Source of the DNA: Podarcis liolepis
Taxonomy: Eukaryota
Assembly (NCBI GenBank): GCA_965112155.1
Contig: OZ218103.1
Strand: one strand, 5' to 3'
Length of the DNA: 64,000 nucleotides
Positions within the stretch are counted from its first letter, which is position 1. Each line of letters starts with the position of its first letter. Below the pieces are notes generated by a model, which was given only the letters and a program-made list of their open reading frames with translations, did not search any database and was not told where the DNA came from. Shown piece after piece: positions 17,421 through 58,794 of the stretch. The translations under genes were made by a program, and so were the position numbers.

Positions 17421-17676
17421 TACCGTATTTTTTGCTCTATAATACTCACTTTTTCCCTCCTAAAAAGTAAGGGGAAATGTGTGTGCGTCTTATGGAGCGA
17501 ATGCAGGCTCTGCAGCTATCCCAGAATAGCAAGAGGGGTTGCTGCTTTAACTGCGCAGCGATCCCTCTTGCTGTTCTGGCTTCTGAGATTCAGAATATTT
17601 TTCTTCTTCTTTTTCTCCTCCAAAAACTAGGTGCGTCTTGTGGTCTGGTGCATCTTATAGAGCGAAAAATACGGTG
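17421..17676. mobile_element. pogo/Tigger-type MITE (CCGTATTTTT termini), short form
   Basis: TA-CCGTATTTTTTGCTCTATAA ... TTATAGAGCGAAAAATACGG. Subterminal sequence is shared with 29722-30573. Single internal hairpin at 17521-17579. Confidence 0.9.
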
Positions 17677-28264: not shown

Positions 28265-29721
28265 ACCCAGGAGCCAAATTAGTCAACCTCTGAGAAAGGC
28301 TGCTTTCCAAAGCACTCTGGTTGGTACACACTCCCAGGTAAGTACCCTCTTAATGCTAAGTAGAAATGATGGAGAGATCCTCAACCCAAAGAGACTGAGC
28401 TGATCTATTTCTCTGTTGGACTTCTCTCTGACATCTTCTGATATAGCCCAATAGCTTCTTGGGGGCGATCCACGGGATTCTTTCAGACAGTGCTATTCTC
28501 CATTCCCCACAATATAAAGTTACCTTTCCTCCTTTCCAGGAGCTGGAGCTTTCCTGCTAGTCTGGAGGAAAGAGAGATCCCATCTGCTTAAAACATGAGA
28601 GCTCACTTTATCCTCTATAAAGTTATCTATGGTGGGAAAGGGGGCAGAGCATGATATTAATTAGCTCTGTGTTTCACAGAACCAGAATCAATGCTGGAAA
28701 GAATCCAACTTCTGTGATCCTACTGTGGAAATATGAGATAGTTCTTTATTCAAAGGCATTGTGTTTCTTTCCTCCCCATGTGTTCCTTCAGCTGCCTCCA
28801 AAACTGTGCCCTGGTGTAGTCAATTTCACATCTCCTTTGAATTTTGTGGTACTAAGGGTTGAGGCTGCAGTGAGGTAAACACAGCAAACTGGATCCCCAC
28901 CTTCAGTGAAGCTCCACAGTTATCAGTGCTGGGTCATGACTGAAGAGGGAATTGTCCTTATTGCTCAAGAAGAAAAACAACCCATCTGTACACCACCCAA
29001 CCCACAGCTGTTCTTATCTCCCACACATTCTTCAGATACTGTTTATTCACCACTGACATTAAGGCAGACTGGAAAAGGAAAGTAATCCTCTTCTTCTAGA
29101 TTCATTCATATACAGTTAGTCCACATCCCCTGGCACTAATCCTAATGATCACCATCTTCCATTAAAGAATGAAGGCTGTGCCAGAAATGACAGCTGGTGC
29201 CACTTGTTGGAAATCTGTCTTATGGCCACATCAGCATAAGTGGATGAAACAGGGGCTGTGAGGTCCTTGCAATGTGATGGGCAGCCAGCACTGGCTCACA
29301 CACAAACAACATGGATGTTTTTCAATGGAAATTCAAAGGTCACACACATCCCTAAAAGGAAAAGGTTGCTGACTCAATACCCTGGTGGTTCATCGGACTC
29401 ATTGACACATGACATTACCAAGTCCAGGAGCTAAGGAGGGGTCTTTTTCAACTAAATTGTTATCACAGCAGAAGCCAGTGCAAAGATGCCTGTTAGGGCA
29501 ACAGGACTTTCCATGCTGCCCTCCCCCCTGTGCCCCTGCCCCTCTAGGGTTGGGAGAACCCCCTGAATAGTGGAGGAGGGATGGAGATCATTCCACTAGG
29601 CAAGCAGAAATCTCCATGGTGCTATGCTGAATACAACTCAAAGACTGAACAATAGCAGTGAGTAGGTGTGCAAAATGAATGCCAAGCACATTAACAACTA
29701 CAGTAATCATGACAATAAATG

Positions 29722-30573
29722 TACCGTATTTTTCGCCCTATAAGGCACACTTTTTCCCCTCCAAAAATGAAGGGGAAATGTGTGTGTGTCTTATGGGGCG
29801 AATGCAGGCTTTCGCTGAAGCCTGGAGAGCGAGGGGGGTCGGTACGCACCGACCCCTCTCGCTCTCCAGGCTTCAGGAAGCTATCCGCTAGCTGTGGGAG
29901 ACCCAGCTCTCCCACGGCTAGCGGAGAGCTTGCCTGCACCCAGAAGCTTGGGGCGCGCTGAGCTCCGCACGCCCCAAGCTTCGGGATTAGCGCAGCGCTC
30001 CGCTAGCCCTGGGAGAGCCGCGGGGCTCTCCCACGGCTAGCGGAGACCTTGCCGGCACCCAGAAACTTGGGGCGCGCTGAGCTCCGCACGCCCCAAGCTT
30101 CAGGATTAGCGCATCACTCCGCTAGCCCTGGGAGAGCCGCGCGGCTCTCCCAGGGCTAGCGGACTGCTTGCCGGCACCCAGAAGCTTGGGGCGCGCTGAG
30201 CTCCGCACGCCCCAAGCTTCTGGATTAGCGCAGGGGTCCGCTAGCCCTGGGAGAGCCGCGCGGCTCTCCCAGGGCTAGCGGACTGCTTGCCGGCACCCAG
30301 AAGCTTGGGGCGCGCTGAGCTCTGCACGCCCCAAGCTTCGGGATTAGCGCAGCGGTCCGCTAGCCCTGGGAGAGCCGCGCGGCTCTCCCAGGGCTAGCGG
30401 ACGGCTTGCCGGCACCCAGAAGCTTGGGGCGCGCTGAGCTCCGCACGCCCCAAGCTTCTGGATTAGTGCAGCGCACCTGGGGGGGGGAATAAATTTTTCC
30501 CCCTTTATTTCCCCCCCAAAAAACTAGGTGCTTCCTATGGGCCGGTGCGTCTTATGGGGCGAAAAATACGGTA
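29722..30573. mobile_element. pogo/Tigger-type MITE, long form, with an internal palindrome array
   Basis: TA-CCGTATTTTTCGCCCTATAAG ... CTTATGGGGCGAAAAATACGG-TA. TA TSD; no transposase ORF. Confidence 0.92.
29884..30474. repeat. 119-bp minisatellite x5, each unit made of two palindromes
   Basis: CAGAA(G/A)CTTGGGG recurs at 29941, 30060, 30179, 30298 and 30417 (period 119). Confidence 0.97.
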
Positions 30574-33500
30574 GATTTCTTCCCTCCTTCTCTTTCCCTC
30601 CTTTATTTAACATGATATAAAGAACTATAACGAATATTACAAGCACCATACAAATCTCATCCATTCTGCAACACAGATGGCGTAAATACTTGTATTTCTG
30701 CTTTTTTATATACCTTATTTAAATTATTAATCATGATTGTTGGAAAGCCCATTGCATTTTTGGATATATTGAACTACTTTTATAATAACAAAACATAACA
30801 AAATTTCCTCTGGTTTATCTCATCCTTGATTTCCTTCTTCATTCTGTTTTGATTGATAGGAGCTTGAGATAGTGAGTTCATTTGATCCAAGTATGTTGCA
30901 AAGGTTTAGATTATCTCCTCTAGATCATCTCCTCTGCAATTGCTTTATAGGTCGTTAAAGAATCAAGTCCTTCCCACTGCCTGACAGTGCTTTCATATGA
31001 AGTAATATGAACAGGCCATGTAGCGTCTCCTTTGTTGTATTCATAGATACAACACTCATTTGAGCACATGCAATGAATGGATGGTGCAATGACTTAATGT
31101 TTTGATTACTGTCCAATAACTACATACCCTGAAGTGATGCGCTGAGTGACCTCTGTTCCTTTATTGTGGGGAAATGTTAATCCTAAAGTGTCCTGTGTCT
31201 AGCTTGCTTCTTGCTGACCTTGACCAGCACCTTGACTACATGTTGTGTGCTACGGTTTCCATGATGACTAACCTGCATTACTATCCATGCTGCCTAATAA
31301 TATGTCCTAGTGAACAAAATGGGGACTACGCCTGTAGACATACATAGGATTGCATTGTTAGGCTGCAATCACTTGAGAGTAAATCATTTCTAATTCTAAT
31401 TAGACATGTATTGTGCTGTTAACCTTTCAAGAGGAAGGTTCCAAACAAAAACAACCTTGGCAAGTTATTTCTGTATTGATTGTGCTAGTTATTAGTATGA
31501 CCATATTTATTAAAATTTCACGTGTTGAGTAAACGCTTGCTGGCTGATTGTCTCCAAAATAAATGTTTTGTAATAATCTTCTCCGACTAAAGCAATATAC
31601 CACTGCTGAGGCAGCCAAAAATAGTCCCTTGCCACCAATTAAAAAGCATTTCATTAGGTAATTTAATGAAACACTAATTATTAAACCCACATGGGTCTTT
31701 ATGATCCTCTCCCAGAAACTTGTTTACAAAGAAAACTATAACCAGCCCAGTGATCTTTAATATTTCAGCCATTGGACTGAACTTCAGATTAAGTGACCCA
31801 GATCAAGAGTAATCACGTTCTTCCAGCTGAGATTATTTTACCATTATTTATTTTGGGTGTTTATAATATTTCTTTTGAGTCATTAAAAGAAAAGTGCAAC
31901 TGGCATTTCATCTTGTGCTGCTGTTGCTTTCTACGTAGCTGTTGATGCGGGCAGATATTATCAGCTACAATCTCAGTTAAAGCATCCATGACTGATGGCT
32001 ATTCAATCTCTGCTTAAAAACCTCCAAGGAAGGAGAGTCCACATGTGCATAAAACAAAAAACACCCCCCCCCAAAAAATGCACTCTTATTCCAAGGAAAA
32101 CATGTCCAAGTAGCACTGCCCCCAAAAACCCCACTGCTCAGGGAAGTATCGGGCATGCAACTGTATTAGTTCAGTGGTGGCCAGACCAGATCTGGGTGAA
32201 AGTGAGCAAGACACTGTTCCCCAGCCCCTCATCCCAAATACGAACCATAACAAAGCTATCCACAGTTTGAGTGTTCTTATTCTGGCTCTAATTTGTTATT
32301 TGTCGGTCTTTTCCAACCTCAACCTCAATTCATCTGTGAAAAGAAAGAATGTCAAGCTCCAGAGCCATTCATAAAAAATGTTAATTGAGACCATACCTAA
32401 ATATCCACCCATCCTAGCCCGCTAAACTTGGCTCGCATCAGTTCCATCTACTGCTGCATCCTGTGCCTCTCAGCTTGTGTTTCCAATCCACAGGATAACA
32501 TCAATTTCCACACCAGCAGGAATTCATCTCAAAGGCAGAGCTTTTGCATGGCTTCCCAGTCTTAAAGCCCAATCAAATCGAAAATTTATAAGGGTATTTT
32601 AAATAACAGAAAACACCTCTTTGACAAAACAAAAGGCATCTGTTTAAAGGGACGCTTTATCCTCTTCCAGCTTTCAGTCAGAGGCACTATAAACTCAGCC
32701 AGGACATGCTTGTGTTCAGGTGATGGGGTGGAGGATGGAATAGTATGAATCAACCACACCTCCAGTTCAGCCATTTTAATAGCTTTTTTCAGTACAGTAT
32801 TCCCACTCAGGGTTGGAGGGGGTCATTCTCTCTGTTTGAATTAACATGTCAGTAGTGATTTAGCAAGAGCATTTCTAAGGAGATCCTGTCTCAGCCACAG
32901 AGCAAATGGAGCACGCGGGGCACCTTTGTAGCACAGCTCCAGAGGCCCTCTTTGCTGTTATTGACATTTCTTTGAATTTAACAAAGCAGAGGTTAATAAT
33001 GACTAAAGAGAATAGTTCAGACACAGGTTTGCATTTCGCTCTTTGCTTTTCTCTGCGTTTCCTTAGAGACGGGTAGGAAAGATCAAGAGATCCCTTTTGC
33101 TTGAATTGTCTTCCTTGTGCTTGCTGTAGCCTTAAATAATGACACCCGCCCCCGTTTCGTTAAGGTCCTGCTGTTGGAATTCGCAGAAACAGCAGCTTGG
33201 GGGGTATATTCTGCTTGGAACTGCTGCATTTTACAGCATGCAAGTAACTACTGCCTTAGCAAGGGAGACTGTTTAAGCACTGACATGCCTTCTCCTCAAT
33301 ATGGTCCTGAAAGTCTTTACTGGCCCCAAACTGTGCTTAGTGCTCTACAAATAAACTCTCTATAATCCTTTTCCCCAAAATGTAGGAGACTGCCTCCATC
33401 TAAAAGACTGCAAATGAAGAAATAAATGGTTACCAGGGGTGTCTGTGCCAAAAAAGGATGTCTAAATGGGATAGTATGTGTAAACATAATGGGCTGGATT

Positions 33501-34258: not shown

Positions 34259-34309
<51 letters not shown>

Positions 34310-34350
34310 GGTATATATATGAATGAGTCTCATGTTCTACTAACTGAGCT
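33632..34350 (-). mobile_element. tRNA-Lys/CR1-tail SINE split by an L1 insertion
   Basis: Antisense CR1 tail and tRNA 3' half at 33632-33765; tRNA 5' part resumes at 34325-34350. Confidence 0.8.
33766..34324 (+). mobile_element. L1-clade LINE 3' fragment (ORF2 CCHC region) with an (AT)n tail
   Basis: KCWRCQEREGTFYHMWWTCKRVKEYWEMI and ESFLLGII..LFMYATT.A..LLA.KWK..EVPTKEEW. 17-bp TSD GAG(A/T)CTCATGTTCTACT at 33749-33765 and 34325-34341. Confidence 0.9.
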
Positions 34351-38599: not shown

Positions 38600-38773
38600 N
38601 NNNNNNNNNNNNNNNNNNNNNNNNNNNNNNNNNNNNNNNNNNNNNNNNNNNNNNNNNNNNNNNNNNNNNNNNNNNNNNNNNNNNNNNNNNNNNNNNNNNN
38701 NNNNNNNNNNNNNNNNNNNNNNNNNNNNNNNNNNNNNNNNNNNNNNNNNNNNNNNNNNNNNNNNNNNNNNNNN
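38600..38773. other. Assembly gap (174 N)
   Basis: Run of N bases. Confidence 1.
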
Positions 38774-56767: not shown

Positions 56768-57200
56768 TAAGAACACAAGAAGACCCCTGACGGATCAATC
56801 CAGTGGTCCATGTAGTCCAGTGTTTCCCAAACTTGAATTTCCAACTGTTTTTGGACTAAAATTCCCATCATCCTTGGCCACTGGTCTTGCTAGCTAGGGA
56901 TGATCGGAGTTGCAGTCCCAAAACAGCTGGAGACCCAAGTCTGGGAAACACTGATCTAGTCCAACATCCTGTTCAACCAGGTGCCCGTGGGAAGCCCACA
57001 AGCAAGACCTGAGTTCAGGAGCAATTTCTCCACTTGTGATTCACAGAAACTGACATTCTGAGGCATGCTTCCTCCAATAGGGAAGCTAGATGACACACAA
57101 CCAGCATGGCTAGTACCCACTGATAGTCTTATCTTATATGAATTTGTCTAATTTTCTTTTAAAGTCATTCACATTCGTAGCTATCTTTGCATCTCACACA
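56768..57200 (-). mobile_element. CR1-family LINE 3' end interrupted by a MITE
   Basis: Antisense of the element at 58795-59024 (ATGAATTTGTCTAAT...; TAAGAAC tail). Confidence 0.65.
56818..56953. mobile_element. Palindromic hAT MITE
   Basis: CAGTGTTTCCCAAACTT ... AAGTCTGGGAAACACTG. 8-bp TSD ATGTAGTC / ATCTAGTC. Confidence 0.85.
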
Positions 57201-57365
57201 TTACATAGCTTAAGTATATACTGTGTGAAGAAATAGTTACTTTCATCTGTTCTGGATCTTCTATCATTGTATATTTACAACAAAGACAGGGAAGGTGTGG
57301 CACTCCAAATGTTGTCAGACTCCAACACACATCAACCTGACAATATTTGGAGGCCATGGGCCTTA

Positions 57366-57754
57366 TACAGGGATTGGAATGCTCCTGGATGATGGGAGAT
57401 GGAGCCCGCAAGACGAATGCCTCGCAAGACGGAAAACTCGCTAGACAAAAGAGTTTTCTGTTTTGGAGGTGCTTCGCAAAACGAATCTCCTATGGGCTTG
57501 CTTCGCAAGACGACAATGTCTTGCGAGTTCCTGCTGGTTTTTTTTCCTCCCCCCCCCCTTTTTCTAAGCCGCTAAGCCGCTTATCAGCTGATCCGATCAG
57601 CAGATAAGCCACTAAAAGCCTCTAAAAGCTGCTAATAGCGCTAATAGCGCTAATCCGCTAATCCTTCAATGGGCTTGCTTCGCAAGACGAAAAAAACCGC
57701 TAGACGAAGAGAATCACAGAACGGATTCTTTTCGTCTTGCGAGGCACCACTGTA
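57366..57754. mobile_element. Tc1/mariner MITE with a disrupted left TIR
   Basis: Right TIR CGTCTTGCGAGGCACCACTG-TA. Left end TA-CAG[33-nt insert]GCCCGCAAGACG. Repeated CGCAAGACG motifs and an internal hairpin at 57579-57609. Confidence 0.85.
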
Positions 57755-58794
57755 TACAAAATAAACAAGTTAACCAAGTAGGGCGCAGGCAGTCTTAAAG
57801 CAGCTTCAGTCAATCACCCTAAGATCCTATTTTTAAAAAACTTGTCAGAAATATCTCTTGGTATTTATTCTCAAAATGAAAGGCAGTATATAAAGCAGCA
57901 GCAGCATATATTAGAAAACATTCTCAAAACTCAAAAGAATTTTTGCTTTCTATAGCCAAATGCACATTGTACATAACTATTCCTTTTAGCCTGACCTAAC
58001 ATGGCTCCAGGTACAATAGGCTTTTAGAGAAAGATTAGCCTGATGAGTCATTTGTGGCTCAAAACTTCCTGGAAGGAAGAAAAATAAGTGAGGCTTGGTC
58101 AAAAGGGTCAGCCTCTTTTCTTTGGCCTTAGCCCCACCCTCGGCTGGCAGTCCATTGTCCTCTCTGGCTGAGGGCAGGTCAAAGGCTAACCCAAGCAGGT
58201 AGGAGGCACCCGTCCAGGTGAGCCCCTGCTCAGTGCCACAAACCCTGCCCACCTGTAGGGAAGGGAGGGTGGAAATTGTTCACCACAAAGAAGAACAACC
58301 TCCATTGTTTTCAGCAGGAATGGTCAAGGATGATGGGAGATGGAGCCCATTAACACTTGGAGGATCTGTGGAATAGGATTAATGAACAGTTGAACCTTTT
58401 TTTTTGCAAGTGGTGCTGAAAAGCCTTTGGGAACAGGAGGTGTTTTTGACACTGCTGAAAATGTTCCCAGGAAATGGTGATTCGCTTTGGCTCTGTCTAA
58501 AAAAACAAAAGGAATAAAACTGTTCTGGAGAGGACATACCATTGAAGGAAGTCTCCCCCTGTCACCCTAGAATGAAAGCAGCCTTGCTATTGCCTACAAA
58601 TCAGCAAAGGGATGTGGAGACTTAGCACTGGCTACAGGACACACTTTTCCTCCTTGTTTTAAACTGGTTTCAGTTGTTTCAATTGCTGTTTAATTTGCTT
58701 GTTTTGTTGTGTATTTTAATTGATGATGTTTTAATTGACCGACTGAATTTTTATTATGAATTTTAATTATGTATGTATTTTTATAATTATTATT

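Follow-up and report, generated by a model that had tools for sequence, protein, structure and literature searches.

MITEs that carry tandem arrays are already known, among them DTC84, Tetris, Xmix/Xstir and miDNA4. Most documented cases of the route from transposon to satellite have so far come from bivalves, insects and frogs, and recent activity of DNA transposons is uncommon in amniotes. DTC84, a bivalve element of the pearl type, is described as a high-copy clam MITE in whose centre up to five core repeats are arrayed (Satovic and Plohl 2013, PMC3879986). According to the same description, a palindrome lies at its unit junctions, repeat variants are ordered along the array, and the inverted-repeat arms are referred to as a 'cassette' (PMC3879986). 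Tetris is a foldback transposon of Drosophila virilis (Dias et al. 2014, PMC4079207). It is described as non-autonomous, with ends in common with the simple MITE DAIBAM, and its internal tandem repeats of ~220 bp are reported to seed satellite arrays (PMC4079207). A review lists two further cases, the Xmix MITE/Xstir satellite of Xenopus and Tc1-mariner MITE/miDNA4, in which tandem repeats are carried and tandem arrays are produced (PMC9659126).

The locus described here lies in a 64-kb window of lizard DNA, by which we mean the whole stretch of 64,000 nucleotides that was analyzed. At 29724–30571 the window contains a MITE of 848 bp, flanked by TA on both sides (29722–29723 on the left and 30572–30573 on the right). 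We read it as a non-autonomous cut-and-paste MITE that carries a tandem array as passive, recently expanded cargo, and we give this reading as a whole a probability of about 80%. The TA duplication points to the Tc1/mariner-pogo superfamily in the broad sense. The terminal inverted repeats (TIRs) are 27 nt long. The left TIR (CCGTATTTTTCGCCCTATAAGGCACAC, 29724–29750, plus strand) pairs with the right TIR (30545–30571, minus strand) when the latter is read from 30571 to 30545, and 24 of the 27 positions agree. This terminus is found again at 17423 and at 17674. Together with an inner, inverted copy of its motif (29784–29802), the left TIR forms a left-end hairpin at 29724–29803 on the plus strand, which was found by the repeat finder and in the fold. 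Palindrome P0 follows at 29815–29876. The repeat finder gave it two 29-nt arms that are 97% complementary, with one mismatch, a 4-nt spacer and a total span of 62 bp. The tandem array of five 119-bp units comes next, at 29884–30474. The right subterminal region (30475–30544, plus strand) was defined by sequence inspection and contains runs of G and C and a second, direct copy of a TIR-like motif.

No ORF of at least 110 aa overlaps 29724–30571, and the interior of the element consists of repeats throughout. Transposase was sought by searching the ten longest ORFs of the window against Pfam, and no family was found in them; no transposase-bearing copy with the same ends was present in the 64 kb. 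The single-strand fold of the element had a predicted energy of -384 kcal/mol (z = -29.5). We also considered the whole element as a foldback. The two-fold symmetry of the array and the pairing of the ends fit that view. The two subterminal regions, however, are not alike, and the foldback was dropped in favor of a MITE with a symmetric array.

The limits of the array were taken from Tandem Repeats Finder and from an alignment of the units. Tandem Repeats Finder reported a period of 119 bp, 4.8 copies and 94% matches without indels at 29906–30474. In the register starting at palindrome A, the units occupy 29884–29998 (u1), 29999–30117 (u2), 30118–30236 (u3), 30237–30355 (u4) and 30356–30474 (u5). 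The number five is that of the assembly alone, as the short-read contigs collapse the array. Each unit is laid out as palindrome A (46–48 bp), a 14-nt linker, palindrome B (46 bp) and a 13-nt linker. Unit 1 has an older form of palindrome A at 29878–29931, for which the repeat finder gave 24-nt arms, 92% complementarity and a 6-nt spacer. The palindrome A copies of units 3, 4 and 5 are perfect and spacerless. They measure 46 bp (30118–30163), 48 bp (30236–30283) and 48 bp (30355–30402), are centred at 30140/1, 30259/60 and 30378/9, and were found both by the repeat finder and by a direct palindrome scan. Besides these three copies, the only perfect spacerless palindrome of at least 24 bp in the window was one (AT)n microsatellite. 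Palindrome B is imperfect over its 46-nt span, with perfect outer arms of 13–16 nt and a degenerate centre around GAGCTC. Its copies were located by the repeat finder at 29940–29985, 30059–30104, 30178–30223, 30297–30342 and 30416–30461; the fourth of these, in unit 4, has HindIII sites in both arms.

An earlier note on this DNA had described much of this anatomy, and our analysis agreed with it. It had named intact TIRs with TA target-site duplications, a near-perfect 62-bp palindrome at the position of P0, and five tandem units. It had also given the sizes and positions of the three perfect palindrome A copies and the 13–16-nt arms of palindrome B, and had stated that units 3–5 are more symmetric than units 1 and 2, which the unit alignment bore out. 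A 20-mer from palindrome A matched nine times, with 0.00 matches expected, and this count and the z-score of the fold exclude a chance origin of the palindromic array.

Unit 4 matched its own reverse complement with 88% identity over 106 of 119 bases. When a half-unit reaching from one palindrome centre (A) to the next (B) was compared with the following half-unit in reverse complement, 52 of 62 positions agreed, and the linkers also showed some likeness. Because the half-units match when reverse-complemented and unit 4 matches itself, the 119-bp unit is best described as an inverted dimer of a ~60-bp half-unit. Such an inverted dimer, repeated in tandem, automatically gives two alternating palindrome centres. 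Units 3–5 were 96–98% identical among themselves, and units 2 and 1 were 91% and 79% identical to them, respectively. The gradient from u1 through u2 to u3–u5 is as expected if the array has recently been duplicating at one side.

A second member of the family was found in the window at 17423–17674 (plus strand). This copy is 252 bp long, is flanked by TA, has the same ends and contains one central hairpin with a 25-bp stem in place of the array. It was 88% identical to the 848-bp element over the left 87 bases and 80% identical over the right 79, the latter value including the right subterminal region at 30475–30544. The central hairpin of the short copy and P0 of the 848-bp element are homologous. 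Contig ends ran past 29810 into other sequence, and their consensus (GCGCAGCTATCCCAGAAGCCAGAACAGCAA) matched the interior of the 252-bp copy, which indicated that the short form is the majority form of the family.

The abundance of the family was judged from contig depth in three DNA runs from three organisms (X1, X2 and X12). Depth here is the sum over all matching contigs and is not a copy number. Summed depth on the flanks was ~100 in X1 and X12 and 18 in X2. It reached 1–5 million on the termini, and array bins in X1 had 17,000–166,000. As depth ratios to the single-copy flanks, the termini were over-represented ~10^4-fold and the array ~10^2–10^3-fold. The array-bearing form is thus present in many copies, so that the array travels with the element, and it probably makes up a minority subfamily. 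In the bin of the unit-3 perfect palindrome (30098–30154), depth was 31,496 in X1, 2,895 in X2 (flank 18) and 732 in X12. The 'new' arm state at 29915 made up 67–68% of the depth in X1 and X2 and 17% in X12. These differences among lineages suggested that the perfect-palindrome variant is a lineage-specific recent expansion. Contig joints within the array were seen as well, for example 29906 to 30038 in X12, and array depth differed among the organisms; no second array-bearing copy was read.

Other collections were scanned with motifs of the element. A 22-base unit motif had a sole match in the metagenome scan (L001, 2479–2501), which was a chance match in an unrelated T-rich contig without the array. 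Nothing was found in prokaryotic genomes with the TIR and palindrome-A motifs, or in a viral collection with the TIR motif. A literature search with the terminal sequence returned unrelated primers only, and no specific paper on this MITE family was found for lizards, lacertids or Podarcis.

Several other features of the window were recorded. A second CpG-rich patch (o/e 0.8–0.9, 42–45% G+C) is present at 57200–58000, around the terminus of a different MITE family (TACAGGGATTGG...) that is unrelated to the CCGTATTTTTCG family. The stretch 57366–57412 was examined as a candidate member of the CCGTATTTTTCG family and was rejected as not belonging to it. A perfect (AT)23 microsatellite lies at 34261–34313. 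The motif TACCGGTA follows directly at the end of this AT run, where a chance origin is plausible. At 38600–38773 there are 174 N, either an assembly gap or a masked stretch.

Contigs of X1, X2 and X12 were aligned to 29300–31000 for analysis of the insertion site. In X2, a 2925-bp contig joined 29720 directly to 30571, with 255 letters on its shorter side. The same joint was made in X12 by a 1281-bp contig with 104 letters on its shorter side. In X1 it was bridged by 27 letters only, under the threshold of 31. With 3 ambiguous letters, 850 bases are left out at the joint, and this corresponds to the 848-bp element plus one TA. The empty allele reads AAATG-TA-GATTTC, with a single TA and without an excision footprint. 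These two features showed that TA was duplicated on insertion and that the empty site is the pre-insertion allele, not an excision product; the TA duplication claimed in the earlier note is thereby supported. The insertion is recent and TA-duplicating, and its site is empty in X2 and X12. The earlier note had also called the element young and mobile, and the missing insertion in these two organisms supports that.

X1 was the run that represented this stretch best. In X1, a contig with zero differences to the window stopped exactly at 29723, where its depth was 117, versus 67.5 on the empty branch. Two haplotypes were seen in X1 at 30759–30925. The first (depth 44) did not differ from the window, and the second (depth 61) had 7 differences in 167 bases, or ~4%. 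Most simply, X1 would be heterozygous, with a filled and an empty allele; this is probable though not firm. The insertion is probably polymorphic. A haplotype divergence of ~4% is high for one individual, and X1 could be a hybrid, a highly heterozygous sample or a pooled run. All three DNA runs departed from the window by T>C at 29597 and by an additional CTTA after 30665. The right flank of X1 was covered by the divergent haplotype only. These two differences may be private to the assembled haplotype or may be small assembly errors.

The CpG observed/expected ratio (o/e) was 0.78 in the element and 0.65 in the 252-bp copy, versus 0.21 in the 64-kb window; the CpGs are largely intact in a CpG-poor genome, as the earlier note had said. 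The array (597 bp, 69% G+C, o/e 0.78) lies within the compositional thresholds of a CpG island (≥200 bp, ≥50% G+C and CpG o/e ≥0.6). CpG transitions (CpG to TpG) account for about four of the differences between units and occur in units 1, 2, 4 and 5. Since the short copy still has a ratio of 0.65, CpG transitions separate the units and the insertion is missing in related organisms, the high CpG content is put down to the youth of the copy rather than to protection. The term CpG-island-like, used in the earlier note, holds for composition only, and youth explains it, with CpG decay already visible.

An Rfam scan of 29300–31000 at E values up to 1 gave no match at gathering score. The best match was MIR1437, with 87 bits versus a gathering score of 168. 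A known structured RNA or miRNA was rejected, as the Rfam matches were sub-threshold, generic miRNA hairpins. A CTCF-like motif in palindrome A was also dropped, being a poor match by eye. RNA was represented by raw reads from ~12% of run X23. The termini of the element were covered, and 99% of the aligned reads continued into unlike sequence, indicating that these reads came from other MITE copies embedded in transcripts. On the array (29984–30439) the depth of RNA reads was at most 0.7 and zero in most bins, in an organism that lacks the insertion and has fewer array units. The silence of the array in X23 is weak negative evidence. Palindrome centres rich in G+C slow the extrusion of cruciforms, as is established for cruciform kinetics. 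The centres here (GCCGCGCGGC) are G+C-rich, and slow extrusion would be predicted for them.

The earlier note had suggested looking for compensatory changes between arms, and such changes were found when P0 was compared with the central hairpin of the 252-bp copy. At four of 23 stem positions the same substitution was present on both arms. A fifth position was altered on both arms, and three changes were on one arm only. Four identical double changes in 23 pairs have P ~6e-4 under independent placement, for a comparison of two family members. Within palindrome A, unit 1 has a pair of G–C type at columns 11/36, unit 2 a mismatch, and units 3–5 a pair of C–G type. By our estimate, a single compensated pair of this kind is expected by chance with a probability of roughly 7%, given the divergence of unit 1. 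By the comparison of P0 with the short copy, hairpin arms in this family evolve in concert. Candidate causes are templated repair within the hairpin, re-creation of the palindrome by strand switching, and selection on the hairpin.

The earlier note had gone further and proposed that conversion within hairpins restored the symmetry of units 3–5. Such conversion is not needed there. Units 3–5 are recent copies of one unit, as their 96–98% identity shows, and a perfect palindrome needs a single origin; they are perfect by descent. What stands of the proposal is that arms co-vary between family members.

P0 precedes the first palindrome B by one period and is 66% identical to it in register. Its arm resembles the arms of A and B over short stretches, at 12–14 out of 15–18 bases. 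From these short similarities, we infer that the array may have grown from the central hairpin of the family, with A and B both descending from P0. The minority subfamily would then have arisen by multiplication of the single central hairpin. A half-unit of ~60 bp would have been duplicated in inverted orientation, giving a palindromic unit of ~119 bp. This unit would have been duplicated in tandem by slippage or unequal exchange, giving the alternating centres A and B. The latest duplications would have produced units 3–5, which would share one perfect palindrome by descent. The element itself was presumably moved in trans by a transposase that recognizes the terminal and subterminal repeats. 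By analogy with the described systems, a satellite in the making is plausible.

Three other explanations were weighed against this reading. In an assembly artefact, the array or its unit number would come from a mis-expanded or collapsed repeat or from a chimeric join of MITE copies. Palindromic tandem repeats are hard to assemble, the short-read contigs never span the array, and the private variant of unit 2 at 30065 was in none of them. Even so, such an artefact is very unlikely. The private substitutions form an ordered gradient among the units, which collapsed or duplicated reads would not give; both ends, the correct TA flanks and an exact empty-site counterpart are present; and contigs with array sequence occurred in all three DNA runs. 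It is very unlikely, too, that the array is a functional host element spread by the transposon, whether a CpG island or regulatory module or a hairpin source of miRNA-, siRNA- or piRNA-like small RNAs. The insertion is missing in related organisms and so is not conserved. The composition of the array, about 600 bp at 69% G+C with an o/e of 0.78, does reach the values of a CpG island, but CpG retention is expected of a young copy and decay has begun. Its hairpins are very stable in the predicted fold and have some likeness to models of miRNA precursors, and MITE-derived miRNAs and enhancers have been described in other systems (PMC9641971, PMC12676858). Against this, the likeness is to generic hairpins, all of it far under the gathering scores, and RNA reads reached the termini and left 29984–30439 at a depth of ≤0.7, in ~12% of a run from an organism without the insertion. 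No host function is indicated.

The third explanation concerns the symmetry itself. The hairpin modules could be actively kept symmetric, either by mismatch correction templated by the other arm or by strand-switching gap repair that re-creates the palindromes after excision. The place of correction would be a hairpin or cruciform that has extruded, or else DNA that is single-stranded while it replicates or transposes, and symmetry would reflect a mechanism and not descent alone. The double changes between P0 and the short copy (P ~6e-4) speak for such a process, and so does the compensated pair 11/36, although the latter has a chance expectation of ~7%. The symmetry of units 3–5 is common by descent and counts only once. 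Private mutations on one arm have remained uncorrected, at 30065 in unit 2 and at the mismatch of P0. Moreover, the covariation comes from two family members and fits selection on hairpins equally well, as it does independent births of subfamilies from fresh inverted duplications. We regard active maintenance as possible but on balance doubtful. A stronger version is improbable: that a templated process tied to transposition or replication preserves or restores the identity of the hairpin arms in this lizard MITE family, and that it also builds arrays in which inverted half-units alternate. Hairpin-templated repair and strand-switch synthesis would be the candidate processes. If it were true, the family would renew itself and keep generating perfect palindromes, rich in CpG, at scattered places in introns. 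It would also offer a natural vertebrate system in which to study how palindromes are born and maintained.

A cut-and-paste MITE with passive, recently expanded cargo remains the reading that we prefer. The insertion is present in one genome and absent from others, where the empty site is exact, and this directly attests to recent DNA-transposon activity in this lineage. The element would show an early stage of the route from transposon to satellite in a vertebrate, with a building block that is unusually regular and fully palindromic. Copies that bear the array count as structural variants and pose difficulties for assembly. Where they sit in introns, such CpG-rich insertions, prone to form hairpins, can pass for CpG islands or miRNA precursors in automatic annotation.

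In its general features, the element resembles MITEs of the Tc1/mariner-pogo type (Stowaway-like, Tigger- or Tc2-derived), with a TA duplication, TIRs, a non-coding interior and high copy number. The label of the earlier note, Tigger-type, names one candidate subgroup among these. The resemblance to Xmix/Xstir and miDNA4 is that of vertebrate MITEs with tandem repeats, and it was drawn from the table of the review, not from sequence (PMC9659126). For the Xenopus MITEs, that table does not mention palindromic double-hairpin units, which are present here (PMC9659126). With Tetris and DAIBAM, as they are described, the parallel is that a short form (here of 252 bp) and an array-bearing form share their ends (PMC4079207). 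In Tetris the repeats are reported to lie inside long TIRs and to form satellite arrays of kilobase size (PMC4079207), whereas the array of the present element is symmetric and occupies its centre, with no long array seen. In layout the element is like DTC84, for which a central array of core repeats between inverted-repeat arms, with ordered variants, is likewise described (PMC3879986). The description of DTC84 gives it a putative target duplication of AA, a microsatellite segment and short inverted repeats (PMC3879986). In contrast, the element described here duplicated TA on insertion and combines 27-nt TIRs and subterminal repeats with a unit that is wholly an inverted dimer and holds two 46-bp palindromes; its host is a vertebrate.
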